A DNA stretch of 64,000 bases from positions 248,001 to 312,000 of the forward strand of contig OZ287700.1 in NCBI GenBank assembly GCA_965649825.1. Reading direction: 5' to 3'. The number at the start of each line of letters is the position of its first letter. Positions within the stretch are counted from its first letter, which is position 1. Of the stretch, positions 1 through 51,741 are shown in pieces. The position numbers were made by a program, and so were the translations under genes. The notes below the pieces were generated by a model that was not told the origin of the DNA, made no database searches, and saw nothing but the letters and a program-made list of their open reading frames with translations. Origin of the DNA: Penicillus capitatus (taxonomy: Eukaryota > Plantae > Chlorophyta).

Positions 1-2491
1 TGGACGTCACATCCGTCAAATCAATTGGAGCACGGACTGGACGAAAAGCGTCGGACTGGAAGGTTTTTTGGGGCATCGATCCCAGAACTTTCTCGAGATC
101 CAAATCCACGGCCGGATCAGGAAGATCAGATTTCAAGACGATGCGGCCTGTCCCAGAGATCTCTCCCAAAACTTGCATGTCACACTTTTCCCTCTCACAG
201 ATCTCACTCAAAAGTTCTCTGTGCTGTGAACGGATGAGCAGACAATCGTTCTCTTGGTACTCGGCACCCCAGATCTCGAGAACAGACATTGTTGGATCAC
301 CAAGGGTAACCTGTCGGATGTCGATGTCGGCACCCTTGGGATAGATAATCTCTTTGACCACATTGCAATTGCCACCTGCCCCCTGATCATGAATCTGCAC
401 GATGGGATTCTCATTGCCCATTTCCACGCAGGCTCGCACCACTCTCCACAATTTCTGAGCCATTTCAGCATCACCTCGCTGCCAGCGAAACGTCACATCA
501 ACATCAAACCAAGAATCTTTGCCATACCTGCACTGCATTGAAATCCAGATCGACTCGATTGGACCCCCCGGGGAGACTGGAGGCGGCGCCGCCACCCATG
601 CCAATGCGATAAGCCGGACCTCCAATCTTGACAACGAGCATGGATACCTCTCCATCGTCCTTCTTGAGATGCTGGTGATCGATGTGACCGATCCCACCGC
701 TAAACATGATCGGTTTGATCCATTCCCGGCGAGACCCGTCTGGCAGACGCTGCCCAAATGTCCGAGTGTAGCCCGCAACAACGGGTTCGCCAAATTTGTT
801 TCCGTAATCCAAGGCGCCGTTGCTGGCTTCGATGAGGATCTGATTCGGCCGGGCGAGATTCTCTGGATAGACGAATGCAGGATCACTCCACTGATGCAGA
901 GTACGATAGGGAGCATCTTCAGGCGACTCCAAGAACTCGAGGTTCCCAACACAGTAACCTGCCGTTGCACCTCCCATGATGGAACCTTTCCCCGTAGCAT
1001 GGGTATCACGAATGCGTCCTCCAGCTCCCGTTTCAGCCCCTAAGGCATTGCCCCGTTGCTGTGCTCTCTGCAAGGATATTGCTAAACCTGGACATGGCGC
1101 AACCGCACAGGGGAAGTTGTGTGTCTCGGCTGTGAACAGAATATCCCAGTCCTGTTCCTTAACCGTCAATGGACTGCATTGCCCGGCTCGAAGAGGGAGA
1201 AGAGGATGGACAGTGCCTCCACGTAATGCCGAAGAATTATCGTCGAATGCAATAACACTATTGTTCGGATGTGCCTTGAGCGGCGCTTGGACCATCTCCA
1301 TCAACGTCTGCGGCATTTGGGTTCCATCAACGACCACTTTACCCTTGAAGTACCAATGCCTAGAGAACAAGCGAAATCTGAGAGAGATCCTGATGATGAG
1401 GGAATAGATAGACCTTGAGTGTTCGCTATTGGACTGGGCGATGTCAAAGAGTTCGACATTTGTGGGATCCCGTTTCATATCGTGTCGAAAGAGTGAGGTG
1501 TAATAATCCAGATCCCATGCATCGAACGCCAATCCCATTTCCTACAGCAGACGTACGGTTTCTTCAAAAGAAGCGTCAGTATTCAGACGTCGTTGATCGC
1601 TTCCAGCGCTGCTCGGCCGTTTTGCATCACAGGAATGGATGTGACAGGACTTGGGGCGAGATCGGAATGCAATGAGACCAACGGTTCAGTGTAGATCTGT
1701 TCCGTCATTCGATCAGAGACCTGAAGACCACAGGTTCGGCGTGATTCTCGGCAATGTGTGTCGACGGACGGCATTGGCGAAGAGGGTGCGATCGGAGGGT
1801 GTCAATGGCGTCGATGTGCCGATGCGATAGCGCACGGATCTTTCGATGCGACGGATGTCATGAAGTCCACAGGCATGACAGATCGAAACGGCATTGGTCG
1901 ACCAGGCCGTCGAAAAATTCAATCGTGGCCCAATCTCCACCACGTCATATGACACGCCATCGTCTCGCACTCCGTTTTCCAGGTCGCTCTCAGAAACGAG
2001 GCTCCCTGTCTCAAACGTCTCTTCTAATAACCACCGCAGCACTGTCATTTGTTCCGCCGCCAAGCCTCCCGTCACCTCAACGTTGAAGCACTACATACAG
2101 GACGCGTTTCAAAAGAGTGAGCACATGTGTGACCGCGAAGTCGTGCCATTTCACGATCGAGGGATCGAAGAGTGGATGGATCAAAGGATCCTGTTTTGAG
2201 TTTGAGCTTCATCGAAAACTCCTCCGCCTCATTGAGCGGAACGCTGCGGTACCATCGCATCACGTGTGAAGCCGTGACAGCTTCCTGAACAAACAAACGC
2301 ATCTCACTCTTGCGCATTCTCTCACACTTTCCCACCGTTTCCGTCGTCGATGCGGACGTCAAAGGCCACATCTTTCGCCATGGTCTCACACACACCGCCC
2401 GAGACGCAGGGCATCGACGGTGCGATCGAATCGATCTGGAAACTGAGCGATCTCGAACAGACGGCGCTCTCCGCTGGCCGAGCCACCTCAT
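1..2491 (-). CDS. purL: Phosphoribosylformylglycinamidine synthase (FGAM synthase), multi-exon, runs off the window start; probable plastid transit peptide
   Basis: Exons encode FDIAQSNSEHSR-HWYFKG, LFTAETHNFPCAV, GAETGAGGRIRD, DYGNKFGEP, REWIKPIMFSGGIG, IGGPAYRIGMGGGAASS and VVEIGPRLNFSTAWSTNAVSIC, all hallmark eukaryotic PurL motifs. The N-terminus is Arg/Ser-rich; ATG at 2491 is tentative. Confidence 0.95.
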
Positions 2492-2651
2492 TACACAACG
2501 CCTTCTCCTCACGCTTCGCGTTTGATCCCGCTCACCGTCGCGGCGCCCATGGTGTCACGTTGCGTCTTGGTATCGACGTCAACCCTTCCAGTATCATCAT
2601 CTCCGACATGTATGTTCGTTCGTGCGTTCGTTCAGTCCTATCCGTTTGTTT

Positions 2652-5604
2652 ATGATGTCAAGTGAAGACGTGTCGAAGTCTCGCCGCGTCACGCGGGAAG
2701 ATACATTGGAAGACGCAAAATTCTTTGATTTCACTGTCTCCACGCCTCTCGTCTTCGCAGCGCAGCCCTCAGACGAGCTCCCCCCTCTCAAAGAAGAAGA
2801 ACTGGTGGACGGGACCATTGAATCGCGCACCGAGTTTCCTGGACCACAAAAATGGGAAGAGACCTATCAGGCTGACCTCCAAGGCGAAGCCGACCGCATT
2901 CTCCAAAACTTCACCAAGACTCCCGTCGACAGCAACTTCGACAGCTCCATGCCACAGACCTCGACCGTGGCCGATGATAATCTCGCCGATCGATTGGGAA
3001 AAGGATTTCTGGATCCGGCGACGCTCATGTTACAGATACAGGAAAACAACGCGCTGCATTTTACGACCTCCGTTCGCCGCTCCCTGGGCGCCACACAGTT
3101 TGCACGGATCACCAGTCGAATGGGATTTCATTCGCGCAGTGCCAGTCGCATACGAGAGGAGCGAAGACGTCAGGAGCTACGTGATCGCGTCCTGCCATCC
3201 AGTTCCAGTTTCAGTCCGGAGTTCTATCTGAGTCATGTCCACGCGGAGACATCCCTGTCGGAGTTGCAGGAAGGCATGCGGTTTCTCGAAGTGGAGCTGT
3301 CCAAACGGACGGGTCAGTTGAAGACGTTAGTCAAGGAGCACTTCGAGGGATTCATCTCCTGTAAAAATTCGATCGATGATGTGCACGTGCGCCTCCGGAG
3401 GAACGAGACACAGAACAGCGGCGCCAATACGGCATCGCTGAAGGCATCCCTTGCCGCTGTACAGACAGAATTGCTGAATTCGTTTTCGCCGATTCTGGAG
3501 AGACAGGACAAACTGGAACAGCTGAAACACGTCATGGAGATTCTTAAGCGATTTCAGTCGTCCTTCAATCTGCCGTCCAATATCCGACAGCTGTCACACA
3601 ACCGCGATTTTCAGCAGGTCGTCAGCGAATACCGCCGGGCGAAATCGACGATGGCAGGGGCGGAGGTGAAGATCTGGCGGAGTCTGTTCGAAGAGGTCAA
3701 GAAAGAGACGACTGACGTGTGCATGAAGATTCATAAGACATTGGAAGATCCCTTACTCGATGTGGACGAAGTACAGGACCTCATCACCTGTCTCTGTCAG
3801 CTGCGAAACGAAGGCTTGGAGTTTGCCTTCACCGTGGAGCCCGTGTCGCTGTGGCTGGTGCATGTGGAGGAGTATGTGCATCAAGAGGTCGATCGACTGA
3901 CAAGACGACACCGTCGCCAGATAGAGAGCGCCGTGCGTTTGGAGGACACGCCAAAAAAGCGTTCCACATTGACAGGGCCTTATGACAGAGATGTCACGAG
4001 GTTGGGCTCGCTGGTCGAAACCCCCTGTGTAGCACAGCAATGCACGGAGTATACGACACGGCTTTGTCTCTTGCTGACGGAACATTTGCCGAAACTGTGG
4101 AAGCTCAAACGCCATCCCCAGCTGCAGAAGATGCCAGACATCGACAACGAGATTCAGAAAGAGATCTGGAAAGAGCTCGACAGTGTGGACGCCATCACCC
4201 GTGGCATCATGGACGCCTTTACAGGCCGAATTGTGCTAACCGTAGAGAACATGCTCATGTCTGACGGACTGCTCTCGCCTTGCGTCTTCACTCTGCTCAA
4301 GGAGCTGCGTCTGTTTGCCTCAGACATGAAAGTCCGCACTCCGTGCCGTCATTGAGCAGACGTATGTATGGATGGTGATGTAGGATTGCCCGACATCGTG
4401 TATGGAGACGTTGACAGATTTGGTCCACGAATGCTTCGAAATGTGCGTCAACTATCTCTGTACCTATCTCAGACAGCAGATGGCGTCTCTGGGCGAATGG
4501 GAGGATTGGAAGATTCGAATCGGCAGTTACTGTCGCGGGCATCCCGTCACGAGCGTCCCTTACAAACTGGGTCAGGCCGTGCGCGATGTCATGGAGCAGT
4601 TTCGTCAGATCAAGTCCGAACAGGACCAGTGGACAGACGTCCGTATCCAAACCGAAGCAAAGAGCCTGAATAATGCATTCAATGAGTGCTTTGAGTCGTT
4701 TGCTATGGCCGTCGAAGGTTTAGCCGTGGAGATCGTCGAACCCCACGATGGCAACGGCCAGCACGATGCGCATGTATGGGCTGTCGGTGTCGAGATCTCA
4801 CTCTTCTCAAAAAGTGTGATGTAGATCCCCGAGATCTCGAAGCTGTTGATTTTGATCAGTAATTCTATGTACATTCGTCAACGCATTGTTCCGGAGCTGA
4901 TGCGACAGTACTCCGAATTTATCAAGGGCCCAGAAGAGAATAACTCCCTGTTGATGCAGTTTCAGAATCTCGAACAGACAATGGTGCAGCGCTTTATCGA
5001 GCACGCCAAGAAAATGACAGAGAAGGCCATCGACGCCACCATCGCCTCCGAAAAAGAATCGCCGCCGATGAAGCTCTCCGAATTTCGCGCCACCGATGCA
5101 CCGTCCACATGGATCGCTGTGATTGCCGATGTCCACAGCGAGTTGATCAAATACGCCCCGTCTAAAGTCGATGTCGTCCTTCCTGCTATGGTGCTGCATC
5201 TGATACGTCGAATAAAGCTCAGGATACAAGATCTGAAACACCTCGGCTTCTTGCTGCAGATGTATATCGATGTGATGTTCGTCGACAATGTCTTCAAAGG
5301 CATCGATCTCCGGGATGTGCACAAAGCCTGGGATGCCATCTATGAGAAACTGAACCATTTGATCTCAGCTCAGATCCGTTTCATGAAGGACATGGATAAG
5401 GATATGGATTATCCAGAAGAGGATACAGGGATGAACGTGCTGAACGTTTTTTCTGACAGTGACCTGGAGGATGTGGTGAAACTGGATAAGAAACTGCAGA
5501 GGCTGTTTAAGGACGGAATCAAAGAGAGCATTCGTGGGATGAGCATGAACCTCGCGTCGATGCGCATCTTTAAAACAAAAGACAAACTGAAATCATCATC
5601 ATAG
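2652..5604 (+). CDS. SEC5: Exocyst complex component SEC5/EXOC2, multi-exon
   Basis: FSPEFYLSHVHAETSLSELQEG...LKTLVKEHFEGFISCKNSIDD and FNLPSNIR...FQQVVSEYRRAKS match the plant Sec5 N-terminal region. ORFs 2622-4355, 4402-4824 and 4846-5604 are linked by short GT-AG introns. Confidence 0.9.
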
Positions 5605-5688: not shown

Positions 5689-7035
5689 TTAAGACTTTAA
5701 TGCGTATGTCTCCTCCAAGTACTTAATGATCTCGGTGCTCTCAAAAATGGCGACGCCTGTGTTGGGATCCTAAAAGTGTGACTAGTCGATAAGAGGGAGA
5801 TGGATAGAGAGAAGCAAACTTCGAGATAAGGAGCTTGGAAGACGCCCACTTTTTCTTTGAGTATTTCTTTCTTTGGACTCCCCCGTGCGCAGCAGATTTG
5901 CAAGAAAGGCAATTCCTAGCGATCGATGATGACGACGGTTAGAAAAAGAGTGAGAAAAGAATGAGATGGCACCAATTCGACGAGACATTCGCGGACGAAT
6001 CGGCTGAAAGGTGATGACTCAAATGCCCAAAACGTCAGCGGCTGATCTGGATACTTCGCCGGTCGATACACTCTTCCCTTGCCAAATCTAAATTCCACTC
6101 TCTCACTCTTTTCGCCAAGCCAAAAGAGTGACATACCTCACCAAGGAAAAGATGCCGCATGTAAAGGTCGTCAGAGGACCCAATCGGAGTGCAAGAGGCA
6201 CCTTGCCGTCTCCATAGTTGCGGAAGAGGTAACGAATAATGTCATTGGATTCGTACATAGAAGTGCCTGTATTGGGATCGATCATATATGGATTGCTAAT
6301 TTTTCCGCCTAGTTCCTGGAGACGTGGTCGATGGCGTGGCCCTCCGACCGGCGTTGGATAGAACATCACATCGAGGTCCAAAATACAGACAGCCTCGCGG
6401 ACTTTCTGGCAAAAGGGACATGCCTGAAACTCGTAGATCTCGATCGGCTGCTCCGGACGCTTGAAGGTCGAGATCTACAAAACCGTGGCCTCCTGTATGG
6501 CATCACACCATCTCACTCTAAGGCGCTCACTTTCGAAGTCGATTCGATGATATTTGGAAATCCTAACGGTTTAAACGGACGATAGGTGGACCCGTCATCG
6601 GGTTCCTAATGTGGCAGAGGGTGTGTAAGAGTGAGAGATGCTGAGGTCACACTTTTGAGAGGCTCAAGGAGTAACCTGCGACCAGCACTCCACTGCCGCC
6701 TCGAAGCGTCGCTGCCACCAATAACCCTATGACCTATGATGACCATCATACCATCACACACCATCACTCCTGTCGACGGAGACGGGCACTTCGAAAAAAC
6801 GTCCTTTGGGAATCTTGTACGCCGCCATCTCTTCCTGCCGAAACTTTACGACTTCGGTCTCCGATGCGACCTCCTTGATGGTCGTTCCTTCACTTGGACC
6901 GCTCGCTGACGGTCGGGCATGAAAGCGACGTCGGAAGGGTCCCTCGCTGCGTCGCGGAACCGAAGCTAAGGGTCGTTGGTTTGCCCAGTGCGCCAGGCCC
7001 TTGGCAGACGTGACAGATATCTTGCCGGAGGACAT
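5689..7035 (-). CDS. Plastid tandem GST-N/thioredoxin-like domain protein (At5g03880-like), multi-exon
   Basis: Two repeated modules, ...PYMIDPNTGTSMYESNDIIRYL...YGDGKVPLAL and FWAFESSPFSRFVRECLVEL...CARGSPK...FQAPYLEDPNTGVAIFESTEIIKYL. Transit-peptide-like N-terminus; TAA at 5689-5691. Confidence 0.85.
6103..6131. repeat. Perfect 10-bp inverted repeat TCACTCTTTT-(9 nt)-AAAAGAGTGA inside a 49-nt intron; type example of a window-wide intronic motif
   Basis: Read directly from the sequence. The intron GTATGTCACTCTTTTGGCTTGGCGAAAAGAGTGAGAGAGTGGAATTTAG on the minus strand splices SLVR|FGKGRVY in frame. Confidence 0.85.
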
Positions 7036-8019: not shown

Positions 8020-10264
8020 CTACTGATCGTCTCCTTGCTGTACGACATGCAGCACGGCTAACTCTGCGTTGCCTTCGTGCTGTCTTAGCAGATCGATGAC
8101 GTGCGCCCGTGGAAAATTGAGCACGTCCATGACTTGATTGATCACCATCTCCGAGAGCTCCACCACACTTTCGTCGCTCGTCACACTACGCCAGCCCATA
8201 CTGGCACTGCGTTCGCTCTCTAGATACAGACAACGCACGCTTCAGATGCGATGGCTCGATCGGTGAGCGGCACCTCCGGGAGGGCGTTCGGCTTCTTGCC
8301 CTTCGCCATCGACGGTTGGAGGTATCGTCGGATGCGAGGCCAACTGCACTTCGGAGCTTCCGTGCAGCAGCACATCGATGCCGAGATTCTTAGAGAAGAT
8401 GTCTTGAAAACTGCGCACTCTGACCCACGACTGATGCTCGTCCAACAGAAACTTGATAAAATGAATCAACTGCGGCCCCGGAAGATTCATCGATTCCTGC
8501 AGGGCTGCCTGGAGAGCAGAACAGAGACGAGAGGTCGATGGATACTCAGCCTTGGGCGACATAATCATCGTCAACGTATCCTTCACACAGATCACACTTT
8601 CTCACACATCGACCCTCGATCGCGATCCACCTGCAGCTGCGGAAATAGATCTTCGTGGGATTTGACAATCGGCGTCAGATTTTTGCGCAGCAGCTCCAGG
8701 GCGACGTCGTAGCTTCCGCTCTCGGCCACGCGCAGCACTTCCAATCTCCACAGCTCGAAGAGCACTTGAGGGTATTTATTGTAGAGCTCCACATCGATCT
8801 CTTTCACTTGTTCGATCGTCTCCAAATATTTGCCGTCTTTCACTTTCTTAAGCAGTCGCAGAATGACTTTGAGATTGGGATCGTGTCGGTAGCTGAGTTT
8901 CTTCAGCTTGCGTACAGGGTAGCTTGGCTTATCGGCCTCAGAAAAGCACTTGGAGAGGCCTTCTCCCGATCCCTATGATCATCTCACAGCCACACGACCA
9001 CATACCATCCTCCTTACCTCTGGCTCCGAACCCGTCATCATCTCTGTATCCGATTTGGAATCGTGAAACTCCTCTTTGGCATCGATCTCTTCGGATTCCG
9101 ACTCGGACAGCTGCAGCAATCCTCTGAGAGCACAGGAGATGAGGGAGCAGTGAGTGATGGGACGGCAGTTTGCCTGTAGCCAGCGTATTCCAAGACGAGA
9201 TTGTTCAGTTCTTGTGTGTTGAGTTTCAGTCGACCGATTTCGCTTTCGAATGCCGTCGAGACATCTCCTTTGCTTCGCTGAAGGGCCTTGACTGCATCGG
9301 CCGTCGAAATGTCGAGCGCGTATTCGATGGCGTCGATATCTTTGTCCGAAATCTCGATCTTGGTCTCGTCTCCCATCGCCATGGGGGCCGGCGTTCGTTC
9401 GGCCACGTAGATCTTTTCGATCCATGGCGTCGTCTGCACTTCATCGACGAGCGTCTCCGTATCGCTCGCTCCGACATGCAGCAGCAAATATTTCAATACA
9501 TTAACGAGATCTGGATCTTTGAGACCTAGTGGTCACACATTGTGTTGGCGGCTGAGATGGGGGGCGGCAAAAGTGTGACCAAGAATGGATTTGAGTGTCC
9601 CGCAGATCAGTTCTCCCAAGTAATGACGTGACTCATCGGACCATTCGTATGAGACGGGGCTCTCCGACGCCGTCTCTTCGAAGACGAACATCAGGAGCAG
9701 TTTCTTGAATTCGTTGTAAGCTTCGGGATAGGCGTGTATGGCGGCGGGTGCCAAGACGTCCCGAATCCAGCCTAGTCACATCACTCAGAAATGCGATGCT
9801 TGAAAAAGAGTGAGATACGAAGGGCATCGGCATCGCCGGCAGATGTCTTCTTCCGCAGCATTTCCACCAGTATCTGTTTCTTCAGCAGAAATTGCAGCCG
9901 GCTGTCCTGCGCAGAGTGATGCGTGAGAAAGAGTGACATGCAAAAAGTGTGACTTCAAGGAGTTCAGGACAGAGCTCCCGAATGAGTTCCTTTGCTTTGT
10001 CAATCTCTCCGTCCTTGATAAAATCTTTGATGGCCAAACACTTGCGTTTCATTTCTTTCGTCGATTCGAAAGCGCCAGATTCCTGTACCGAGAGGTCCAT
10101 CATCGAGCAGACAGGTGTATGTTCGTTCGGGGTACCTCTGCGAGACCTTCGCACAGCATGTAGCTGAGGACCATCGAGTCCAGGGCGTTGAGGTTGATTC
10201 CGGTTCCTTGGCGAAGCTCCGGCATCTTTTTCTTTTTGGCCACCTTCGGTCGAAGGCAATTCAT
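8020..10264 (-). CDS. Tandem LisH/CTLH protein with UBA-like domains (resembles plant At5g66810), multi-exon
   Basis: LisH-like INLNALDSMVLSYMLCEGL and LNNLVLEYAGYR; CTLH-like LAIKDFIKDGEIDKAKELIRELCPELL and VLFELWRLEVLRVAESG; UBA-like DAIEYALDISTADAVKALQRSKGDV and NQVMDVLNFPRAHVIDLLRQHEGNAELAV. Start at 10264 or 10225. Confidence 0.7.
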
Positions 10265-10429
10265 GAAAAGCGACGTGGCGCTGCGGACGCGACCGAGACA
10301 GACGGTACGACACTTTCCGCACACATGCGCTGCCAACTCTCCCAAACGCGCTCCCCAATGAAGCACGAATTCACCATACGACGTCTCACACTTCCCATTC
10401 CGCACTTTCTCACTCTTTTGGCTGCCTAC

Positions 10430-10971
10430 GCTGTCGACTCCGATCACTCCCGCTTCATACTGAGGGGTATGTTCGTGCAGATGTTCCATGACTGGGTCAT
10501 CGCTGTCAGTCTGGCCATGGTGTTGCTCGCTTTCTTTGCCCTATCGACAAATCGCGGTATGCAAAAGAGTGACCAGAGTGTGTGAAAAGAGTGAGATTGC
10601 TAGAGTCTTTGACATTACTGTGTGGCGTCGGGATTGTGCTGGAGCGAACATCTCTTCTCTTACGGCAGCGTCAGATCTTTATCGAAATGGAACGCATCGA
10701 GCACATTCTCATTACCGAAGTCTGTCTCATTGACGATCCACACATGGTCACACTTTCGATCAACATTCAGGTCATTGGTTCAACGGATGTCCACTTTCAC
10801 CTCGTCTTCCTTCTGAAAGATCAAACAGATCTAACCGTTGCCTTCGAAGTACGGCATCCAGATCTAATAGATCATCACACCATAGATCTTTTGGATCACT
10901 CCAGGATCTCATGCCTTCGCTAGAGCAGCTGAGACAGATCTACCAATGCCTGCTGCAGTCCTAAGTGCCAT
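10430..10971 (-). CDS. Candidate small spliced gene of unknown function
   Basis: ATG at 10971 opens MALRTAAGIGRSVSAALAK, which resembles a presequence. A downstream exon reads DFGNENVLDAFHFDKDLTLP followed by a GTAAG donor, and an intron-type motif cluster sits at 10563-10595. The model needs GC-AG intron(s); an alternative ATG is at 10912. Confidence 0.3.
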
Positions 10972-10979: not shown

Positions 10980-12514
10980 TCATCTGTGCTGTTTTCGTTT
11001 CTTTTGGCGTAGGACGGTCTTCATCATCTGCTCTGCTTTGTCCTCGTCCTCCTCCTGCTGTCGTCTCTTCTTCTTATCTTCTGTCTCTTTGATCTCGGAC
11101 AGCGACAGTCGCAGTGCTTCGGTCACACGTTCCAGCATCATCAACACTTCTTCTCTGTCGGTTCGGAACGCATCCATCTTTGTCTGAATGGCGTGTTCGA
11201 TTTTCTGAAAGTTCTCGATGTCGTATTGTGTGACCATCGTGATGGCTCGGCCGCTACGACCGGCGCGGGCTGTTCGGCCGACTCTGTGGATGTAGTCTTT
11301 CGCGTTCTGAGGCACGTCATAGTTGAGAACGACGTCGACAGAAGGGATGTCTAATCCTCGACTGGCAACATCTGTCGCGATGAGAATCGACTGCTCGCCA
11401 GATTTGAACTTGTTCAGAGACGACAGGCGTTTTGGCTGTGCCATCTGGCCATGAATCGGCACGGCACCGAAGCCAAGATGACGCAACATCAAACAGATCC
11501 TCCTCGCACTCTCACACGTTCTGAGAAAGACCTATCGTCGATCGAGTGTCATAATGAGTGAGGTATGAAAAAGAGTGATACGATGAGTGAGAGTCCTGTG
11601 AGATCATTGAGTGCATGCACCAGATAGCATTCCTTGTGCTTTGCTGGAAGGAACATGTATTGCTGTCTGAGGGTGTCCACCGTCGAGTACTTTGGGGAGA
11701 TTTCCACCTGGACAAGTCACATCAACTTAGCAGCAGAAGAGTGAGAATGCGAGGTCACACTTTGACGGGATTCATCAGCGCCGCCCTTTTGAGTTTGTGC
11801 ACTTTCGCCGTCATCGTCGCAGAAAACAGCTGCGTTCTGCGTTGCTTGGGCACCGCTCTCAGAATCTGATCAATCTCTTCTTCGAAATCCATATCCAAAA
11901 GCTTATCCGCCTCATCCAAGACCAGATGCCTAACCGTCCGGACACTGAACCCCTGCCAAGCAGACGGCCTTGTGCGATGGACTGGCTGCACGTTGGTGCA
12001 CTTTGGTATGGCTCAGATGGTCGACGATGCGTCCTGGAGTACCGACAATGATATGCGGCTGTTTACCGATGGCCACCGACTGCTGCATCATATCGACGCC
12101 TCCCACCAGCACGGCACATCGTACGCCAATGCCGGAGCCCAAAGCCTCAAACTGTTCAGCAATTTGCACGGCCAGTTCTCTTGTGGGGGCCATAACGAGA
12201 GCGAAGAAGGGCTTCTGTACATCGAGGAGATCCTGCAGAATGGGCAGAGCAAAGGCACCTGTCTTGCCCGAACCCGTCTGGGCCAAACCGATCACATCTT
12301 GTCCTGCACAGCAAGTGCACGTCGGCTGGTGTGGCGTCGGTATGTGTGATTTGTGTGACCAACCGGCGAGTAGCTTCGGTATCGCTTCCATCTGAATCGG
12401 CATCGGCCTTTTCCAGCCGAGCCGAGCAGCGACTTCCGAAAGCTCACGGCAGACACCGAGCGACGCAAAGGCCGCAGCCGATGCTTCGACGTCTTCTCTT
12501 TCGGCGTCCGTCAT
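10980..12514 (-). CDS. DDX47: DEAD-box RNA helicase RRP3/DDX47 (18S rRNA processing), multi-exon
   Basis: Q motif FASLGV...[10 protein letters not shown], then [39 protein letters not shown] and [33 protein letters not shown] is typical of Rrp3. Confidence 0.93.
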
Positions 12515-12874: not shown

Positions 12875-15225
12875 ATGAACACCGCGGTGCACCGCAAACG
12901 ATATTTGGCTTTCTTCGCACTCCTGGTCTATCTCTCTCGACTGTCGACAATCGACGGCAAACGTCTGCCGTATCTTGACGGTCGCCAATCATACCCACGC
13001 CCATTCATGCCTTTCTTGACATGGCCATGGTGTAGAAGGAAATAAAATTGCGAAGAAAACAAAGGCAGCTTCTTCTTCGCACGCGTCTGGCGATATCCCT
13101 GTCTTCAAAGGCCGTTTGCGTTACAACCGTTTCTATCGAGGCGTAGTACCACGAAGAAAGAATGTCACGGACGGCGCGGAGACAGTGCCACAAGGTCGCC
13201 TTCTGCACAAGACCATACATCCATCGAACGTGTTTTGACAGGTTGCCGCATCGACGAGGCAGAAATTCAACAAATCTATGACGAAGGTACCAAGACATGG
13301 ACGCTGAGCGACGAGACGCTGAAGAGAAACGCCATGGACGTACAGCGTTTTGTGGATTGCGCGACTGATGACGATACCTTGCTCTTCGTCACGGAATCCC
13401 GTATCCAACCCCATCGCCATATCGTCATCAACAAACGCTTGACACTGACGGGCGCCGCCGTGAATGGCCGCAAGGGCGGCGGCGGCGGCGCGAGGAGATC
13501 AAACTCCGATGTCTCGTTCACCTGTCCATCTGAACTGGAAGGCGTGTTCGTGATTGAGTAATGCAGTTCTCACTCTATTTTGATGTGACAGCTGATGTTG
13601 GGTGTGGTTAGATCTGCCGGTGTGGTGGTGAAGAATCTGATCATCGAGGACTGCAAGCTCGAGAGTCACAGTCCCATTGTGTTTTCCAAATGCAAGACGG
13701 AAACGAAATGGTCGCCCATCGTTCTGTCCAATCTCGTTTTCCGACGAAACAGCAATTTCAATGGTCCAAGCGTCTTGGCTGTCAAGGAGGGATGCTGTCC
13801 GTCACTGTCTCTCGACGATGTGACCCTCCGATCCAACACCTGTTACCAGAACACTGCTGCGATGAATCTCAAGGCACGCTTCGTCGCGCAGGGACAGGAG
13901 TGCGAGGTGGGTGTTTGGTATAGGGAATGGATATTGGCGCGGTGCGTTTTGAAGCGAGCGATAACAAATGCCAGGTGCTGCGGGTCCACGATTGCTACGT
14001 GTCCTTTCGTGACAGCCGATTCATCAAGAACGCCAGCGGCAGAATGTCGGATGGCACTATTCAAGCGACACACTCCGTCCTCAAGATTCGCGAATGTCAA
14101 TTCATCAAGAACAGAGGAACGCAGGCGGGAGCACTCAGCCTTGTCGACGGCGTCGTTGCCAATATCGAATCATCGAAATTTCATCGAAACAGTGCCAGCG
14201 GATCTGGCGGCGTCATCATGCTTATGCACTCCGTTTTGAACGGCAATGAGATCAGCGCCCTGAACAATACGGCGGCGGCGAGTGGCGGCTTTATGATGGC
14301 GTCGTGGGGAAAGATCCATCTGATCAATTCGACCTTCGCTCGACACAGCAGCAACGAAGGGGCCGTGTTTTCGACACTCAACAGCACCTTCGTCGGTGAA
14401 CATCTCACTCTTCAAGACAACGAAGCATCCGGCACGGGCGGGGGACTGTTCTTGGTGGGCGGAACGACAACGCTGAAAAACTCCGTCCTGAAACGAAACG
14501 TCGGCGCTTATGCTGGCGGCGGCGCGTTGAGTGGCATCAACGGAGAGATCACCGTTGAGAATGTCCTGGTGTTGAAGAATCGCGCTCTTGGGAACGGCGG
14601 CGGCGGGATTGAGACGCAGGGCGTGAATATGTATCTGTCCGATTCTGTCTTCCAGTCGAACAAAGGCCCCAGCGGCGGCGCTCTGCGTTTTCACGGAGGT
14701 ATCACCAGAGCTTCTCGCGTGACGCTGGAGAAGAACAAAGCGACGATGCGTGGAGGCGCCATCTATTCCGACACCTGTCACATTCTCTTTCAAGACTCGA
14801 CATTTGCGGAGAACATTGCGATGGAAGGCGGCGCCATCTGTGCCGAGAAGGGGCGGTTTGAAGGAACACAGATCGACATCGTTCGCAACCACGCAACACT
14901 CAATGGAGGTGGAGCGTATTTCTGCACGACAAAGGCACGACTCACGTCCTCCCTTCTCGAAAACAACACCGCCCTCTACGGAGGCGCCATTCACGTGCTC
15001 AACAGTATGTTCTCTGGCCAAGATCTCACCGTTCGACAGAACGCAGCGGAACTGGATGGCGGCGGATTCTTTATTTATCATGCCAGTGCCTTTCTCAGAG
15101 AATCCATCTTTGAGGGGAACCGTGCCGGAGAGAACGGAGATAAGGCCATCACGACAAAGAGATCGAGACTCCGAATGGAGCGCGTCGAAATCGAAGGTGA
15201 AATGGAGAGACCGACGGCATCTTGA
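12875..15225 (+). CDS. Secreted right-handed beta-helix protein with polymorphic-membrane-protein-type GGA(I/L)/FxxNxA repeats
   Basis: Signal-peptide-like RYLAFFALLVYLSRLSTIDG. The last exon (13927-15225) has many repeats such as FHRNSASGSGGVI, NKATMRGGAI, FAENIAMEGGAI and NTALYGGAI. Confidence 0.8.
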
Positions 15226-26233: not shown

Positions 26234-26998
26234 TTACGAACTAGATGAACTTAAATGAACACACGCACGTCTGGATGGGGTGTCTCTGGACTCGGTGTCA
26301 CATTCAGTTGGAGTCTTGTCTGCTTTCTTGTCCAGGCCAGCTATCGACGATCGCTGAGCCCATAAGAAGTCATTGGGTCAGGGTGTTGTCTTCCCCACAG
26401 CAAAAGAGTGAGAAACAACTTTGTAGACACCAGAAATCGTCTCACTGCCATGTCCAATGGTCTGACCACATTGAGTCCATCCGGTCGAAAGGTGAATAAT
26501 GAAGAAATCTGTTAGTTTTTCATCTTCCATCTGTGTGACATTTATCTGTTCTGAAGGAGCGAAGTTATCATGCAGGAACACGATCACGCACTCCGCCGTT
26601 GGAGTTCACCGAGTATCGAGGTTCTTCGTGACTCGCGCGTCAAAACCGTGCTGAGTATGTAGGATCGATTCCCGCAATGGGTCGATTAAAAACGTACTGT
26701 TCATAGTCTCATCGTTCAACGTCACTGATTTCATCGAGACTGAAGTGATCGACACAGACTTGGTTCCATTCACCTACAGCGTCCCGCAGATTCTTCTCCA
26801 TTGAGTGATCCATCCAACACTCCTCCAGTTGGACGACGGAAGAGGACGCATCATAAGAGTCACGTTGCTGTTATGACAGATAGCATAAGAAGCCTCCATT
26901 GAGCGATGCACTCTTCTGTTCGGCAGCCTCGCCTTATCCAGACCAAAAAGTAGCGAAAACCGTTCTTCAGCCAATGCCTCATCTTCTGGCATCGTCAT
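26234..26998 (-). CDS. Hypothetical multi-exon protein
   Basis: Consecutive protein-like frames (MTMPEDEALAEERFSLLFGLDK...; TFLIDPLRESILHTQHGFDARVTKNLDT; IVFLHDNFAPSEQ...) are separated by GT..AG segments, one carrying the intronic AAAAGAGTGAG motif at about 26402. No family was recognised. Confidence 0.3.
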
Positions 26999-41522: not shown

Positions 41523-42665
41523 TCATCCACTTTGGCGGAAATCGGGCCATTGGAAGACCAGAGCGACTGCGAGAAAGGCTGCCGTATTGACAATGACCGG
41601 CAGACGATCATCCGTTCGTGCGATGATTGGACCCAGTCCCAAATTCACAAACAGAATCAGCCATAGAGGTGAGAAGACCAGAATCCAGCCCAGTCGCTGA
41701 TAGAGAGCCTCTGTCGTACGACACGCGTTCGTTAGTTGGCAGACAGGAGAGAGATTGCCGACCTGCATCTAGTTTGGATGAGAAGCCGAGGACAACGCCT
41801 CCGGCCAGGGATACCCACAGTGTTGCCAGAAACTGATCGGTGGATAGACCGGGAACGACGCCGCAGCCTTCGGGCCGCGCCAGGCACACTTTTAAGCTGT
41901 CGACAATACCATCCACCGCTGCAGCCTCACCCTAGTGTCCAAGACGGCGCTCTGTCAAGCGGTCTCCCTTTGTTGTCGATATAGGTACACCTCTTGGCGA
42001 ACGAAGAAGAGATTTCCGAACCGTGACTGCAGTTCCACCCAAAACGGTCGCTTGAGTTTTGCCTGGATATCATCTCCGATGTACCGGAATGCAACGATGT
42101 TGGGGGATGAAGGATCGAAAGCCACAATCACAGTCTTATCATCTGGCTTCCACGCCTCACTGTGTGACATTCACGACAAAGAGTGAGAAGACGTAGCCGG
42201 GTGACCCACCGGATATCGGATTCCGTGAGACGCAATTCTCCTTGGTATCCAGAAAGGAGACGAATGCGCCATCCCGTATCTCTAGACCGTGTGATCAGAG
42301 AGCAGACGAAAAAAGAGTGAGATACTGTTCGAATTGGATGAGAGCGTCGTTTGTTTGCTGTCTCTTTCCTGTCGGTATCACTTTTGCGGCATCCAACTAC
42401 ACAGCCATCACCTCATATGCCTTCCGGAAGATCTCACTCATCACACAATCGCGTTTTGAGAGGACAGGGCGTCGGTGAGCGATGCCTGGGCATCGACGAC
42501 GTGACAACCGAAAAGCAAGAGACCTGTCAAGCATCCTCCACACAGAGCCCGTCCCCATTCCACGCAGCGCCCTTGCTGATCGTTATGTCGCCGAAGGGCC
42601 GACGCTCGTGGAGCAGAGGGTCGCGTCGGGGCGGCGATCGGAATGCGCGTCGTTGATGCCATCAT
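41523..42665 (-). CDS. Hypothetical multi-pass membrane protein, probably plastid-targeted
   Basis: Transit-like MMASTTRIPIAAPTRPSAPRASALRR. Exons include IQAKLKRPFWVELQSR and hydrophobic FLATLWVSLAGGVVLGF, LGWILVFSPLWLILFVNLGLG and VIVNTAAFLAVALVFQW. Confidence 0.6.
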
Positions 42666-42699: not shown

Positions 42700-45600
42700 A
42701 TGCAAGGCGTCTTCTTACCGCAACGCCCTGGCGTCTCCTGTCGCCTCACGCATCGCCGCCGAGTTTCTCGTCGTCGGGCCGCTAAACCTGCACGACGCGT
42801 CGGGCGTTACACCTCTCTCATCCTCCGCGCCAGTGTATCCACCCCTATCCCGTCGCCCACCAACCACCCATTCCTTATCTACTAGGCCGAGCCGAACAAA
42901 CCCGTTCGAATCAACGGATCGGACGATGTCGCGAGTCTGGCGAAGATCGCGGCGGAGTTATCCGTAAAATCGTCGACACCTGTGCGCAAGACGGAAGAGA
43001 AGGTGACGACAGAGAGCAAGCCCGTGTCGACCGATGCGCCTGCCACACCTGCGAAGTCAAAATTTCTCTTCGAGAAGAAGAGTAGCTCCAGTACGGCACC
43101 AAAGGTGGAGCCCGTAGGTACGTTCGCGAACAAACGAACGCAGATCATGGTCGATGGGGTGGACGACGCTGACCGAGTTTCAGAATGGTTTAGGGTCGCC
43201 CTCTGGATCCGGCCATACCTCGCAATGCGTCCGATCCTTGCGAAATTGTTGGCGTCCCTTGAATGCATGCAATGATCTTTTTGATCCATGATCCATATGA
43301 TCCTCAACTGCTCTGTGTTAGTGTCCAAGGACCCGACCTTCACGATCCCGCCTCAATCGATGGACGGAGTCACCGAAGACGTTAAGGGACTGACGCTCAA
43401 AGACATGACACATAAAGACGATGTCTATAACATCGAGCTCAATTGGCTGGCCTTCAATTGGAGAGTGCTCCATATGGCTGCCGAAGTGCGGGTCACTCTT
43501 TTGAGTGAGATGTGTGAGAATCTCTGCGGTATTAGGAATCGATTCCGTTGTTCGAGCGGCTGAAATTCTTGGCCATTACGACGAGCAATTTGGACGAGTT
43601 TTTCTGCAAACGTGTTGGGGGCCTGATGCGACAACGAGCAGCTGGAATGGCCAATCTCGTCAAAATGAAGCAGAGATGGTCACCTACTTACCAACTGGAA
43701 CTCGTCTCCAAAGTCCCATCATATCACACATTGCCCACACGATCTCACACTTTTGCATGATAGGAAGTGCGAAACATGGTGAAATGGCAGACAAACGCCT
43801 TTTTCGAAAAGATTCTGCCGGCCTTTAAAGAGGAAGGCTTTCGCATCTTGAAGCATTCAGACATCAATGCCGAGGGCGCGAAGTGTGTCAAGAGTATTTT
43901 TAAGAATGAGATCGAGTCGCTGTTGACGCCGATTAAACTCGATCCCGGCCATCCATTTCCTATACTTCCTTCCAAGAGTATCAATCTCGCCGTTCTTTTG
44001 GAAGATCCCAGAGACAACGAGCAGAAACTCGAATGTGCGATCGTCAATGTGCCGCAAGGGGCGTTCAAGAAATGGAGAAGGATCAATGAGGAGTACGCAT
44101 TGGAAGACGCGTCGTGGACGAGCGGCTACCTTCCCGTCGAAGAGATCATTACCCATCACATCGGTGAGCTCTTCGGTGGCATGAAGATCATCGGTGTTCA
44201 TCCATTCCGTGTCACACGTAATGCCGACATCGAACGCAACGAAGAGGAAGCGGAAGACCTGCTGGCAATGATCGCTGCAGAGCTACGCGAGCGAAAGTGT
44301 GTGAGAAAGAGTGACCAATAGGCTTTCGATGTCCTTCATGTGTATGTTTCTAGATTTGCTCCGTTCGTGCGTCTGGAAATCAATGAAGGCGCTCCGGATG
44401 ATCTTATTGATCTGCTCACGTCCGAACTGCATTTGGATTTTGATCAGGACGTGTACAAGATTGATCGTCTGGTCGACCAGAGTGATCTCTTTGAGCTCAT
44501 GGCTTTGGCAGAAGAATTCGTGCAGAATACGCTTCTCTACCCTCGAGCTCTGCCACAGAACAACCATCGATTGGCACCGAAGACCCTCAGACGCAAAGAT
44601 CTGAACAGATCTGGATCGAGCTGGAAAGACAGACGCAGCATTTTCTCCATCATCCGGTCTCTGCCTGTTACTGCCTCATGATGTGACAGGTCTGTGGTGC
44701 AGGGATGGGGATATCTTGGTTCATCACCCTTACCAAAGCTTCGACTCCTCGACGCTACGATTCCTGGAAGAATCGGCGAGCGACCCGAATGTCTTGGCTA
44801 TCAAGACAACGGTCTACCGTACATCGACGAACAGTCCTTTCATCGATGCCCTCCTGACGGCGCGCGAAAACGGCAAGACAGTGACGGCATTGGTCGAAAT
44901 CAAGGCCAGATTCGACGAAGCGCATAATATGAACATTGTCAAGACGCTGGAACAGGCGGGATGTCATGTGGCCTATGGACTGGTCGGGGTCAAAACACAC
45001 TGCAAGACGATACTAGTCGTGCGCCGCGAGAAGAATGCGCCCAACGGATTGCGCACGTATGCCCATACAGGCACAGGGAACTATCACCCGTCCACCGCTC
45101 GGCTGTATACCGACTTCGGTTTGCTGACCTGCGATCCGGATCTCTGTCGAGATGTTGTCGATCTCTTCAAGCATCTGACAGGAATGCACAACCAGAAATC
45201 TGTCGGCGGCTTCCGTAAACTCATCGTGTGCAGCGAATTTATGCAGAAGCAGTTCCTCGATCTGATCGATAGCGAGATCGAAAACGCCAAGGCTGGAAAG
45301 CCGGCGGCCATCTGTCTGAAAATGAATGGCCTGGATGAAAGGGTCATGGTTCAGAAACTGTACGAGGCCAGTCAGGCAGGTGTCCGTATCGACTGCATTG
45401 TCCGTGGCATCTGCCGCCTTCGACCTGGCGTCCAAGAGTTCAGCGAGAATATCCGAGTGATCAGTATTCTCGGCAGATATCTGGAGCACGATCGCGTTGT
45501 CTGTTTCCACAACAATGGCGATCCTCTGTACTTTCTTGGATCTGCCGATTGGCTGCCGCGGAATCTTTATGATCGGGTTGAGGTTGTCGCTCCTGTTCGC

Positions 45601-46123: not shown

Positions 46124-47019
46124 CTAAAGCGCAGCGGCGTTTTGCACAAACCCACGTCGAATGGCCAAAATGAACGCCTTGAGATTGTTACTCCGCTTGA
46201 GATCTTCCACCAGCGCCTCCACATTGGGCAGAATGGGCTCACACTTGGTCACTGCATCACACATTTCAAAGCCGCGCTGTCGAGTGGTCACACATTTGAC
46301 CTTGATAGGTTTGTTGGTCATCTCCCAGTGTCATAAACAGGGTGAACGTCTCTTGCGGATGGCGCTCCGAGATTCTGTCGAATGCAAAGCGAATCATCGA
46401 CCCCTGCCGTTCAAAATTTAATCCTAATGCCGTACGGTACTTCTCTCTTTTCTTCTCCATCTCCTGCCATCGTCTCTCCCATACCTCTTCTCTCTCTTTT
46501 GCCTCTATCACGCTCCAAAGAATAAGATGGCGTTCTCACTCTTTCTGTGATGTGACATTACTTCTTTGGGTCAGTTCCAACGATCTCTTCAGTTGTGTGA
46601 TCTCACGCTTTTTTTCATCCAAAGCTGCTTGAAGGGAAGGAATCTCGTGCTGGCGCTTATAGGCTGTTTTTTCGAGCTCCTCTTTCTCCAGGTGTCGTGC
46701 ACAGATTTCTGTCAGTAGGCGACATTGGAAACCTCGATGTCAATGTGGGCCTTATACTTTGATGCGTCGCTTCTGCCTCGTCACAGAGAATACGAATCCT
46801 CTCGTCCGCCGTTCGCTGTGTTTCTTCGCATTTGGAACAACCACAAGCGTTTCGCAAAGAGCGTCGAATCGCGAAAGCGGAAGGACCTCGCAGGTGCTGC
46901 AAATTTTTATCATGTTCTTGGAGTAACGCCGTCAAGTCGGTGCGAGATTTCTCAGCGCATGCTTCGATTTCTCGAAGCAATACGCCAGCTTCGTTTTCGA
47001 GAATCGTTCTGTCCAGCAT
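46124..47019 (-). CDS. SPC25: Kinetochore NDC80-complex subunit SPC25, multi-exon
   Basis: Coiled-coil N-terminus followed by the RWD-like Spc25 domain YRTALGLNFERQG..IRFAFDRISERHPQETFTLF...VTKCEPILPNVEALVEDLKRSNNLKAFILAIRRGF. Confidence 0.85.
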
Positions 47020-50403: not shown

Positions 50404-50458
50404 CCGTCAGATCGCCATGGAATTGAAATCGTGCTCATTGACCGACACGGAACCACAG

Positions 50459-51326
50459 ATGCAATCAATTTTCACTCTCATGCGCATTTCGCTTCCGCGC
50501 ACGAAGACCACGACCGGCGTGAGATCGTTACGCCCAACGGCCGGTCTCATCTTTTGTTGTCAGAAAACGGTGTCAAACGGCAAAGGTTTACGAGCAGGGG
50601 TCGATCACGTCACTGAAATGGATGCAGGGAGAAAGGTAACGGCGGGCGATGTTGTCCAGATTCGTTTCTCGTGCAGAGAAGCTGATGATCAGGTTTCTGC
50701 CTTCTCTCTGAGATGATGTTGCCTTCAGAGCGCGGTTTCTAGCGGACAGGCGGGCCGTGGATCAAAAATGAATTGTTGACATTTGAAGTGGGCGCTGGAG
50801 AGTTTGTTGGCAATAAGCTGTTTCAAGTACAGAGCCGTCTGACGTTTCGATCAAATGCCATCGATCGATTCCGCAGGGATTCGACGAAGCAGTTCGTGGC
50901 ATGGAGAAAGGTGAAACCACTGTGCTTGAGGTATGCTCCCCGGGTGGCAGGAAATCCGTCTGTCACATGGTGTCGGCATGGCGTGAAGACGGACGGCGGA
51001 GAGTGGAATGCCGACTTGCTCTTCAAGATTCCTGTTTCGCATCCAGAGATTGAGAGACTCAAAGGCCGCTATCAAAAGTCCGTTCAACAATTTGCCGAGA
51101 TGGACTGTTTATGCGAAAAAACCCCTCTTGCGTTTTTATTAGTCAAGGAGGATTAGAGAAGGGGAGAGTGGTGGAGTTGGTGAACAAGCAACTCGCATTA
51201 GTTGTCGATGTTAATGCAACGCACGTCACACTCGATGCGAATAATATGATGGCAGGGAAGAGGGTTGTTTTTGACGTCTCGCTTGAAGATATTCTCCCAA
51301 CGAGTCCCAAAGAAGAGGACACTTAA
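50459..51326 (+). CDS. SlyD/SlpA-type FKBP peptidyl-prolyl isomerase-like protein, probably organelle-targeted
   Basis: GDVVQIRF, LTFEVGAG, and C-terminal VVDVNATHVTLDANNMMAGKRVVFDVSL (compare SlyD VxxDxNHPLAGKxLxFxV). The start (50417 or 50459) is uncertain. Confidence 0.72.
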
Positions 51327-51741
51327 GAAGAGTGAGAACTAAAACATTGAGAGGTCAAGTTGCGAAGCTCGTCAGGCTGACGACTTCTTCGCCGAAACGG
51401 GGTCTTTATGTGGATGCGTGGAAAACGACCGAAAGAAAAGAATCGTCAAAACAGAAACCTTGGTGATCTGTTAGGAGCAGTTGTCGGCAATTGTCTCCTC
51501 GTGCATGCTTCGATATGAAAGATCGATGGTTAAGTACGTGGTCAGTGAGGTCACTTCGTGCGGGAACAAAACCGTCGTTGTGTGGACGACTTCCACACTC
51601 CACGACATCGCACGCGATGCCAAAAAGACTGTTTCAAAATCTTCCGCGTTTTCGATCAGGACGGCAGTAGATCCGATGTGAAAAAGACAGAAATGCTCAT
51701 CAGATAAAAGAACCGTCCATCCTCAAGACATCCGAGAAACG

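Follow-up and report, generated by a model that had tools for sequence, protein, structure and literature searches.

Several kinds of sequence elements are known to reside in introns or to define them. Intron-identity elements include the G-runs of short vertebrate introns and the polypyrimidine tracts between donor and branch site in short fungal introns. The plant motifs of intron-mediated enhancement (IME), e.g. TTNGATYTG in Arabidopsis, work from transcribed sequence only, act additively and are absent from the promoters upstream, and in the nonconventional introns of euglenids the two intron ends pair with each other. Introner elements of Micromonas, Aureococcus and other algae are intron-resident, and some families carry terminal inverted repeats (TIRs) and can be spliced in either orientation (Gozashti et al. 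2022, PMC9860276). Those of Amoebophrya exhibit family-specific inverted repeats of 8-20 nt and direct repeats at the junctions, and the introns are mostly not of the GT-AG type (PMC7789003). Here we describe TCACWCTTTT, a 10-nt motif present on both strands in the very short introns of a 64,000-nucleotide stretch of nuclear DNA from Penicillus capitatus (contig OZ287700.1, positions 248,001 to 312,000; hereafter the window). It is a selected 10-mer found in about half of the introns of one narrow clade and absent from close relatives at the same intron positions. Thereby it touches two general questions, namely how the cell recognizes very short introns whose splice sites carry hardly any information and how new splicing signals are born.

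The two strands of the window hold 20 exact matches to TCACWCTTTT, compared to 0.47 ± 0.63 (at most 2) in dinucleotide-preserving shuffles. The recurrence of this motif had been noticed in an earlier sequence-only reading of the window, and the sites lie within 1-5 bases of the positions given there; further sites listed by that reading (2305, 4798, 9927, 11740-11760, 42178, 44307, 46533 and 30181) proved to be true copies of the 8-mer TCACWCTT. This 8-mer occurs 49 times at about 4.4 expected, and TCACTCTT (30 vs 2.4), TCTCACTC (29 vs 2.8) and TCACACTT (19 vs 2.0) are among the most over-represented 8-mers of the window. The copies are clumped: the first 12 kb hold 27 of the 49, the interval 36-48 kb holds 13, and the sequence past 52 kb is free of them. 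The 8-mers of the first 12 kb (11 plus, 16 minus) exhibit no clear chromosome-strand (replication) bias. Both orientations, doublets and occasional hairpins were likewise found as described; the inverted repeat at 6103-6131 has 10-nt arms and a 9-nt spacer, the one at 43493-43508 has 6-nt arms and a TTTT loop. The copy listed at about 181 is not intronic; it lies at 180 in the coding sequence of purL, where the frame is uninterrupted. A 36-nt intron around this copy was ruled out, the reading frame (...ICEREKCD...) being continuous and conserved. A literature search with the motif strings returned primer sequences only, and the passages of the Ostreobium genome preprint on introns, GC content and repeats contain nothing on an intron motif.

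For comparison we used the sister-species sequences L002 and L005 (second haplotypes L004 and L006), which show 86-87% nucleotide identity to the window and are syntenic with it at 6-14446 and 34740-51367. Furthermore, we included an intermediate alga (L129; 89% identity in the polyphosphate kinase PPK), a more remote alga (L003 and L007, both of Logan run SRR33785045; amino-acid identity of 64% in the exocyst subunit Sec5 and 87% in PPK) and the PPK locus of Ostreobium quekettii (L008). Exons and their strand were set by synonymous versus non-synonymous differences in two-species alignments, and an intron was called where GT and AG were conserved and the reading frame was preserved. The models were checked against an intronless homologue in the case of Sec5 and against the protein of O. 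quekettii in the case of PPK. In this way 24 introns were modelled in the first 14.4 kb and 25 elsewhere, 43 of these 49 having exact GT-AG ends. Home-made gene finding with hidden Markov models and dynamic programming was used for leads only; strict settings broke genes, relaxed ones fused genes and invented introns. An acceptor at 2087 for purL intron 2 was discarded, as it leaves an in-frame stop; the intron is 2066-2133.

In positions 1-14446 the 8-mer reaches a density of 15.5 per kb in introns (21 copies in 1.36 kb), compared to 0.30 per kb in coding sequence (3 matches) and 1.23 per kb in other non-coding DNA (4 in 3.2 kb), which bears out the claimed concentration in introns and rarity in exons. 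The four other non-coding matches are located on a donor, beside a donor or in a probable intron of a 5' untranslated region (5'UTR), and the promoters, divergent intergenic spacers and 3' flanks of this region contain zero 8-mers. All 49 introns together hold 43 copies of the core TCACWC/GWGTGA, whereas dinucleotide shuffles of the same introns hold 9.5 ± 2.8 (at most 18), so that the frequency in introns is not the one expected from their composition. The core is present in 21 of the 43 GT-AG introns with one to four copies each. Rich in the motif are the introns of purL (5' part), of the glutathione S-transferase (GST)-like, CTLH-domain and helicase genes and of PPK (5' part); the five resolved introns of a choline-transporter-like gene (35-37.6 kb) and several others are core-free. 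The motif introns of the CTLH gene, spaced by 135-415 nt, show by eye no regular nucleosome-like period.

Outside the motif, intron bases are 73.8% identical between the window and L002. This is close to the value for four-fold sites (71.7%) and indicates that these bases are effectively neutral. Motif bases are far better conserved, with 88.2% identity for the core (p=2e-5) and 92.5% for the 8-mer (vs 73.6% in the intron bases around it, p=6.5e-8), the latter being on par with coding DNA. Decay of CpG was rejected as a cause of this conservation, because the contrast persists when CpG positions are removed (90.0% in the motif vs 75.2% in the remaining intron, p=9.5e-6). Thirteen of 20 motif 8-mers are perfectly conserved, compared to 20% of other CpG-free intron windows (p=1.8e-5), and conserved motif blocks stand between diverged spacers, e.g. 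in 4774-4824, 6088-6136, 6636-6657 and 9526-9579. The second syntenic block has 13 copies, of which about 7-8 are conserved; measured against all non-coding DNA, a class which there still held unrecognized exons, the difference (0.86 vs 0.81) is not significant. Within introns that otherwise evolve neutrally, the motif is subject to purifying selection; it is real, significant and functional in the evolutionary sense. Apart from the motif, intron CpG positions in 1-14446 are 62% identical to the sister species, other intron bases 75%, which suggests CpG hypermutability and hence possibly cytosine methylation of gene bodies.

The sister species is enriched, too (L002 with 13 copies vs 0.14 expected, L005 with 4 vs 0.08). 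TCACWC occurs 3 times in L129 at 6.5 expected, TCACWCTT once in L007 at 1.4 expected and not at all in the 22.9 kb of O. quekettii. The motif is thus restricted to a narrow clade, with strong representation in the window, L002 and L005, whereas it is weak or missing in L129, L007, L003 and O. quekettii; an exception among the motif-poor relatives is the last GST-like intron, whose L003 orthologue has two sense copies. This contrast between clades provides a dated natural before/after comparison for the birth of an intronic signal.

The 43 GT-AG introns are 34-79 nt long (median 50 nt), and we know of no introner family with introns as short as those of the window (45-55 nt). From +3 to +6 of the donor no base reaches 50%; +3 is C in 20, A in 13, G in 8 and T in 2 introns. 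The donor consensus consequently comprises GT only, with GTC, GTA and GTG all frequent among the curated introns, and the acceptor consensus is limited to T-N-Y-A-G. The orthologous introns of O. quekettii are 100-420 nt long, with GTAAG-type donors and no motif, and indicate that introns were miniaturized and donors degenerated within the algal group including this species. In the small-intron relatives L007 and L129, which are motif-poor, the donors are a little more conventional. Gene finders that have learned from canonical donors will annotate such genomes wrongly.

Two further words recur in the window. GATGTGAC is present in 21 copies vs 3.5 expected, window-wide (e.g. at 492, 9775, 11716, 13582, 44680 and 47344). 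It is sense-oriented in introns, 2-15 nt before the 3' AG of many acceptors, and its reverse complement is close to the donor at 46549; likely it is a branch-site or 3' element of the alga. CTAACCGT / ACGGTTAG occurs 7 times vs 0.9 expected (4236, 5935, 7976, 10831, 11930, 15244 and 37302). At 5935 it follows a motif copy in an intron and is CTAAC branch-site-like, some other copies being exonic; it may be a second signal, either of Myb type or a branch site. U12-type introns possess a rigid /RTATCCTTT donor and the branch site TCCTTAAC. The donors GTATCTCACTC and GTATCACTC merely resemble the U12 type; no TCCTTAAC branch site was found in the introns, and the spacing from GT to the motif varies from 0 to 4 nt. 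Rfam at the gathering threshold gave zero matches in the window and five related loci; no tRNA was found, and no small nuclear RNA (snRNA) gene lies in the 165 kb examined. To what we take to be the canonical U1, U2, U6 and U11 segments the motif fits only partially, e.g. [A]CACUU to U2 AAGUG.

With respect to transcription the orientation of the core is balanced (22 sense, 21 antisense), and the 8-mer leans to sense by 14 to 8. The location within the intron depends on orientation: the mean relative position is 0.30 for sense and 0.54 for antisense cores (Mann-Whitney p=0.0027), with 10 of the 22 sense cores confined to the initial 17% of the intron length. Three donors read G/GTCACAC (the slash marks the splice junction), and sense copies also touch or share the donor in GTATCACTC, GTATCTCACTC and GTATGTCACTC. 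Purine-strand copies with W=T themselves form donors, namely AAA/GTGTGA at 2327 and 44297 and CAAAGT/GTGACC at 11758; altogether four or five donors have the form AAA/GTGTGA or AAAGT/GTGACC, and several 3' ends read GTGTGA-N2-7-AG. Other sense copies are located 10-30 nt before the AG, where UCAC (branching at its A) followed by UCUUUU resembles a branch site plus tract, and other purine copies 5-20 nt before the AG, where UGAY could serve as branch site. The sequence-only reading had taken strand independence as an argument against a branch point or polypyrimidine tract. The independence of the core from strand stands, yet the exclusion of a splicing role was too strong, since both strands carry a branch-like U-N-A-Y tetramer (UCAC, UGAY) and the purine form is used as donor.

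We tentatively favor, with a probability of about 40%, the reading that the motif is a lineage-specific cis-element of introns, an auxiliary signal of intron definition which would be read in the pre-mRNA. UCACWCUUUU(G), the pyrimidine form, stands for the most part in the 5' third of the intron, often touching or sharing the donor (G/GUCACAC, GUAUCACUC, GUAUGUCACUC), or else precedes the AG by 10-30 nt. AAAAGWGUGA(Y), the purine form, is found chiefly in the 3' half at 5-20 nt from the AG, or constitutes the donor itself (AAA/GUGUGA). Where both are present, in a minority of introns, the two forms can pair. A pyrimidine-binding splicing activator of the TIA-1/UBP1, PTB or U2AF kind may bind the pyrimidine form and aid the recruitment of U1 and U2 across so short an intron. 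Where it precedes the AG, the pyrimidine form may mimic a branch site with its pyrimidine tract, and the UGAY core of the purine form might be used as branch site. The near-blank donors point to a need for an auxiliary signal, and relatives with the same intron positions and without the motif have more canonical donors, most clearly O. quekettii with GTAAG.

Several points weigh against this auxiliary-signal reading. The full 10-nt sequence is used and conserved on both strands with the same W degeneracy and like flanks (TC, GG or TG before TCAC, G after the T-run), which it leaves unexplained; this near-equal use of the extended motif argues against a single RNA-binding reader. Part of the symmetry may be trivial, as the core GTSAC reads as a branch-like U-N-A-C on both strands, but the T-run and A-run have no symmetry of the GTSAC type. 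Many of the 5'-proximal sense copies are too near to the donor for branch sites. Since only 21 of 43 introns have a core and some multi-intron genes, e.g. the choline-transporter-like gene, have none, the motif is dispensable for splicing. Finally, the intron models are our own. Among known splicing elements an equal use of two strands is unusual, so that whatever reads the motif may be something other than a conventional RNA-binding protein.

Chance is excluded as the source of the motif, and so is a base composition of introns rich in pyrimidines or CA; the motif does look like a degenerate CT/CA-rich tract of the kind frequent in introns, but the shuffles of window and introns fall far below the observed counts, purifying selection is confined to it and the sister species is enriched independently. 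Alternatively it might be that a protein binding double-stranded DNA recognizes TCACWCTTTT either way round and acts in transcribed regions, by nucleosome phasing or chromatin marking over linker-sized introns or as an element of the IME type. We rank this reading second, at a probability somewhat below that of the favored one. Equal core orientation, identical flanks and W degeneracy, the conservation of copies in both orientations and the gene-specific distribution are what such a reader predicts. Clusters of a single orientation (four sense copies in 9907-9953; three purine copies each in 10557-10603 and 8581-8630) point the same way, and since only about half of the paired copies agree in their W base and one W changes in L002 without compensation, each copy appears to be an independent site. 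The position bias would then be a side effect of the limits that splicing sets, purine copies resembling donors and the 3' third being reserved for branch site and AG. However, the first 14.4 kb contain no copies in promoters, divergent spacers and 3' flanks compared to 21 in introns, the position depends on orientation, the copies are in register with donors and acceptors, and the 8-mer and 10-mer forms lean about 2:1 toward the sense strand. The DNA-binding-protein site proposed by the sequence-only reading keeps the equal strands and the one-orientation clusters in its favor and has the missing promoter copies, the orientation-dependent position (p=0.003) and the overlap with donors and 3' ends against it. 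A third view, which we regard as unlikely, is that one young clade of Ostreobium-like algae has partly handed intron recognition to a new 10-nt code word active on either DNA strand. Its reader could be a DNA- or single-strand-binding factor restricted to gene bodies which marks the cut sites, or a lineage-specific RNA, e.g. an altered stretch of an snRNA, which matches one form in sequence and is complementary to the other. If true, this would explain both the precise use of GT-only donors and the spread of the motif into pre-existing introns after the split from motif-lacking relatives.

It had also been suggested that the copies are eroded TIRs of an introner family, for which lineage-specific positions with target-site duplications (TSDs) would be the test. 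In such a history, the common ancestor of the window species and its sister would have acquired short mobile or templated DNA, introner-like or similar to miniature inverted-repeat transposable elements (MITEs) with GGTCACWCTTTT TIRs, which inserted into gene bodies both ways round; parts of it would have been kept where they overlapped splice signals. In about 7 of 8 mixed introns the sense copy comes first and the antisense copy last, as expected from TIRs, some introns (9526-9579, 2066-2133) start with GGTCAC and end with GTGACC plus a few bases and AG, and one extended sequence on both strands in a narrow clade would fit as well. Nevertheless, we hold a mobile origin to be improbable, and for these introns it is largely refuted. 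All seven motif introns tested (two each in Sec5 and the DDX47-like helicase, three in PPK) occupy positions common to more distant, motif-lacking relatives: both Sec5 introns are shared with L003, and the PPK positions 43486-43535, 43716-43799 (a region) and 44297-44353 with L007 and L129. The PPK positions shared with O. quekettii are 44297 and 44657, of which the 44657 intron has no core. Direct repeats at the junctions (1.77 nt) do not exceed those of mismatched donor-acceptor pairs (1.74 nt), so that there is no TSD signal. Local alignments between motif-masked introns score no higher (mean 5.8, maximum 13) than those between shuffled sequences (mean 6.5, maximum 14), and the terminal inverted-repeat score is marginal (4.00 vs 3.61 in shuffles, p=0.07) and clear in few introns (9526-9579, 2066-2133, 6088-6136). 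Moreover, the motif is constrained while the rest of the intron is neutral, and intergenic copies are missing. Due to the old shared positions, the missing TSDs and the lack of similarity outside the motif, the motif is in all likelihood not an introner relic or transposon debris; surveys of introners should consider that a short two-orientation motif, at times forming inverted repeats at intron ends, can mimic eroded TIRs. A genuine repeat family caught by the hairpin pattern, unlike these introns, aligns over more than 100 nt. In the same metagenome scan for the hairpin form, which otherwise returned scattered unrelated matches and no further relatives, this AT-rich family (...AAATTGTCACACTTTTTT-N18-AAAAAAGTGTGACAATTTG..., with more than 100 nt of common flanks) was found in L016, L027, L036 and 14 other contigs of JGI sample Ga0208946; it is unrelated to the motif and is a MITE-like element of another organism. 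Very improbable, finally, is a hairpin of RNA (or cruciform DNA) as the functional unit, in which the 5' pyrimidine arm pairs with the 3' purine arm and joins the intron ends. A perfect 10-bp stem in 6088-6136 (minimum free energy, MFE, z -3.9) and an 8-bp stem in 9526-9579 (z -2.3), arms conserved in L002 around diverged loops and the 5' and 3' bias of the two forms speak for it. On the other hand, among the 43 introns folded there are 21 with the motif, and only 5 of these carry both orientations (9 are sense-only and 7 antisense-only; by hand count about 8 of some 25 over all introns), three of these five are unstructured (z +0.6, +0.3, -0.7), and the mean z over all introns (-0.31) is not significant. 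In about 4 of 8 pairs of copies the W bases agree with each other, and L002 has the alternative W base in the 5' copy of 9526-9579 with no compensating change in the 3' copy. No covariation between arms was found, and the co-occurrence of 5' TCAC and 3' GTGA (hand count, 5/9 vs 11/34) is not significant. Hairpin formation is not the general function of the motif.

Table 1. Genes of the window named in the text and motif copies with their introns (sense and antisense relative to transcription; a slash marks the splice junction).
Feature	Position	Strand	Length	Motif content and remarks
purL/FGAM synthase gene	window start to 2365	-		
Exocyst subunit Sec5 gene	2652-5601	+		
Polyphosphate kinase PPK1 gene	43.3-45.9 kb (43285-45955)			
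Intronless paralogue array	27125-34670	-		five open reading frames (ORFs), 256-385 aa
purL coding sequence	180..189	+		exact copy, exonic; coding match
purL intron 2	2066..2133	-	68 nt	begins G/GTCACAC; second sense copy GCTCACTCTTTTG (10-mer 2111-2120); GGTGAC 6 nt upstream of AG
purL intron 1	2285..2327	-	43 nt	donor is purine-strand motif, GGGAAA/GTGTGAGA; second purine copy CAAGAGTGAGA 19 nt upstream of AG, then U-rich tract
Sec5 intron 2	4774..4824	+	51 nt	sense TCTCACTCTTC, then antisense AAAAAGTGTGATGTAG; position common to L003
GST-like gene, 3' end of last intron	5772..5781	-		sense copy TAGTCACACTTTTAG/GATCCC
GST/glutaredoxin-like gene, intron	5916..5972	-		TTCTCACTCTTTTT immediately upstream of CTAACCGT; 10-mer 5944-5953
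Intron	6088..6136	-	49 nt	GTATGTCACTCTTTTGG...CGAAAAGAGTGAGAG; perfect 10-bp inverted repeat; sole strongly structured intron; L002 keeps both arms, loop diverged
Probable intron, same gene as 6088..6136	6606..6675	-	70 nt	boundaries approximate; CAAAAGTGTGACC (antisense), then TCTCACTCTTAC (sense); 10-mer 6647-6656; block AGATGCTGAGGTCACACTTTTG wholly conserved in L002
CTLH-domain gene, intron	8581..8630	-	50 nt	three purine-strand GTGTGA; last adjoins AG
Intron	9526..9579	-	54 nt	G/GTCACACTTTTGCC...AATGTGTGACCACTAG
Intron	9772..9818	-	47 nt	GTATCTCACTCTTTTT...GAGTGATGTGACTAG
Intron	9907..9953	-	47 nt	four sense copies (three exact TCACWC cores and TCTCACG); antisense zero
Possibly 5'UTR intron	10386..10419	+		two same-strand copies TCTCACACTT, TTCTCACTCTTTTG upstream of small plus-strand gene; conserved in L002
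Intron	10557..10603	+	47 nt	three purine-strand copies, no sense copy; 10-mers 10563, 10585; 89% identity to L002
Intron	10720..10770	+	51 nt	GGTCACACTTTC 21 nt upstream of AG
DDX47-like helicase, intron	11532..11581	-	50 nt	GTATCACTCTTTTT...CCTCACTCATT; L003 intron at same position, no motif
Helicase, intron	11708..11758	-	51 nt	donor in CAAAGT/GTGACC; TTCTCACTCTTC mid-intron; GATGTGAC 9 nt before AG; position common to L003
Short intron	13558..13591	+		GTAATGCAGTTCTCACTCTATTTTGATGTGACAG
Non-coding DNA	26402..26411	-		lone exact copy
Intron	38200..38278	+		TTCTCACTCTTTTGG, then AATGTGTGAGA; 10-mer 38233-38242
Non-coding DNA between conserved minus-strand exons	42311..42320	-		exact copy; conserved in L005, likewise the copy at 42179
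PPK intron	43486..43535	+		GTGCGGGTCACTCTTTTGAGTGAGATGTGTGAGA..., 6-bp hairpin, TTTT loop; position common to L007 and L129, whose introns are without full motif; L129 retains one GTGTGA core
Next PPK intron region	43745..43754	+		sense copy; region 43716-43799, boundaries uncertain; L005 has GCACTCTTTT there
PPK intron	44297..44353	+		donor AAA/GTGTGTGAGAAAGAGTGACC; two purine-strand copies; position common to O. quekettii (after aa 56), L007, L129
PPK fourth intron	44657-44702			GATGTGAC, no core; position common to relatives including O. quekettii (after aa 162)
Predicted intron	46252..46300	-		AATGTGTGACC and AATGTGTGATGCAG
Predicted intron	46505..46561	-		GTAATGTCACATCACAGAAAGAGTGAGA...GCGTGATAG

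The window has a G+C content of 52.1%; the passage of the Ostreobium genome preprint on GC content gives 52.4% for O. quekettii. In addition to the genes in Table 1 it contains genes for GST/glutaredoxin-like, peroxiredoxin, CTLH-domain, DDX47-like DEAD-box helicase and PMP-repeat proteins. The closest named relatives are O. quekettii for the PPK protein (65% identity), Caulerpa lentillifera for Sec5 (53%) and land plants for the purL protein. We take the host to belong among the Ostreobium-like bryopsidalean green algae. The bacterial-type PPK1 of the window is a spliced nuclear gene, as it is in Closterium and O. quekettii, and the green lineage seems to have acquired it long ago. The ORFs of the intronless array have no Pfam match. 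An ORF on the plus strand (54449-55270) is almost the same as the array gene at 27.7 kb over a stretch of 30 nt and looks like an inverted paralogue of this array.

L002 and L004 are 99.1% identical across 21.7 kb at equal coverage (168x) in one sample, so that L002/L004 and L005/L006 are probably two haplotypes of a diploid alga. For O. quekettii, diploidy and a heterozygosity of 1.29% are reported. The synteny with the sister species stops at 51367, beyond which L005 (16668-21026) has a NACHT/HEAT-repeat gene. The window from 51367 to 64000 differs from L005 in content, has a G+C of 55-57% and zero motif 8-mers; a TPP-enzyme N-terminal domain is located there at 58057-58815 on the minus strand. 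A 97-nt indel relative to L002 lies at 7041-7137, in the divergent promoter/5'UTR between the GST-like and peroxiredoxin genes.

Like the introners (PMC9860276), the motif is algal, intron-resident and restricted to gene bodies. It differs from them by the old shared positions, the absence of TSDs, the lack of any family similarity beyond 10 nt and the constraint on the motif within a neutral intron. With the Amoebophrya introners and the euglenid introns it shares a 5'-proximal sequence complementary to a 3'-proximal one, and hairpins are predicted in some cases. In contrast to Amoebophrya, one and the same motif is spread across unrelated introns, which have GT-AG ends, no junction repeats and mostly a single orientation. 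The IME motifs of plants also belong to the green lineage and occur in transcribed sequence near or within introns and not in promoters, but their sequence is another one, and the motif described here is not confined to 5'-proximal positions, copies being found in 3' introns, too. What would be expected of a DNA-binding factor is seen in the orientation independence of the extended motif, whereas 1-14446 contain no copies in promoters or other non-transcribed DNA.

The order UCAC, then UCUUUU corresponds to the textbook layout of a branch site followed by a polypyrimidine tract. However, a branch site has a single orientation and a fixed window and is present in nearly every intron, and we found 22 sense and 21 antisense cores in only about half of the introns; about one in two sense copies, moreover, is just 2-9 nt away from the donor and thus no candidate for a branch site. 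Intronic splicing enhancers compensate weak sites in short introns; like them, the motif comes in multiple copies, is not tied to a fixed position and is enriched in introns while being depleted in exons. The pyrimidine form sits between donor and branch region as the tracts of fungal type do. Splicing enhancers act in one orientation, whereas here the reverse complement is equally frequent and equally conserved, and the signal is a specific 10-mer and not a matter of composition. What characterizes an intronic enhancer, i.e. enrichment in introns and purifying selection within neutral introns, was found for this motif.

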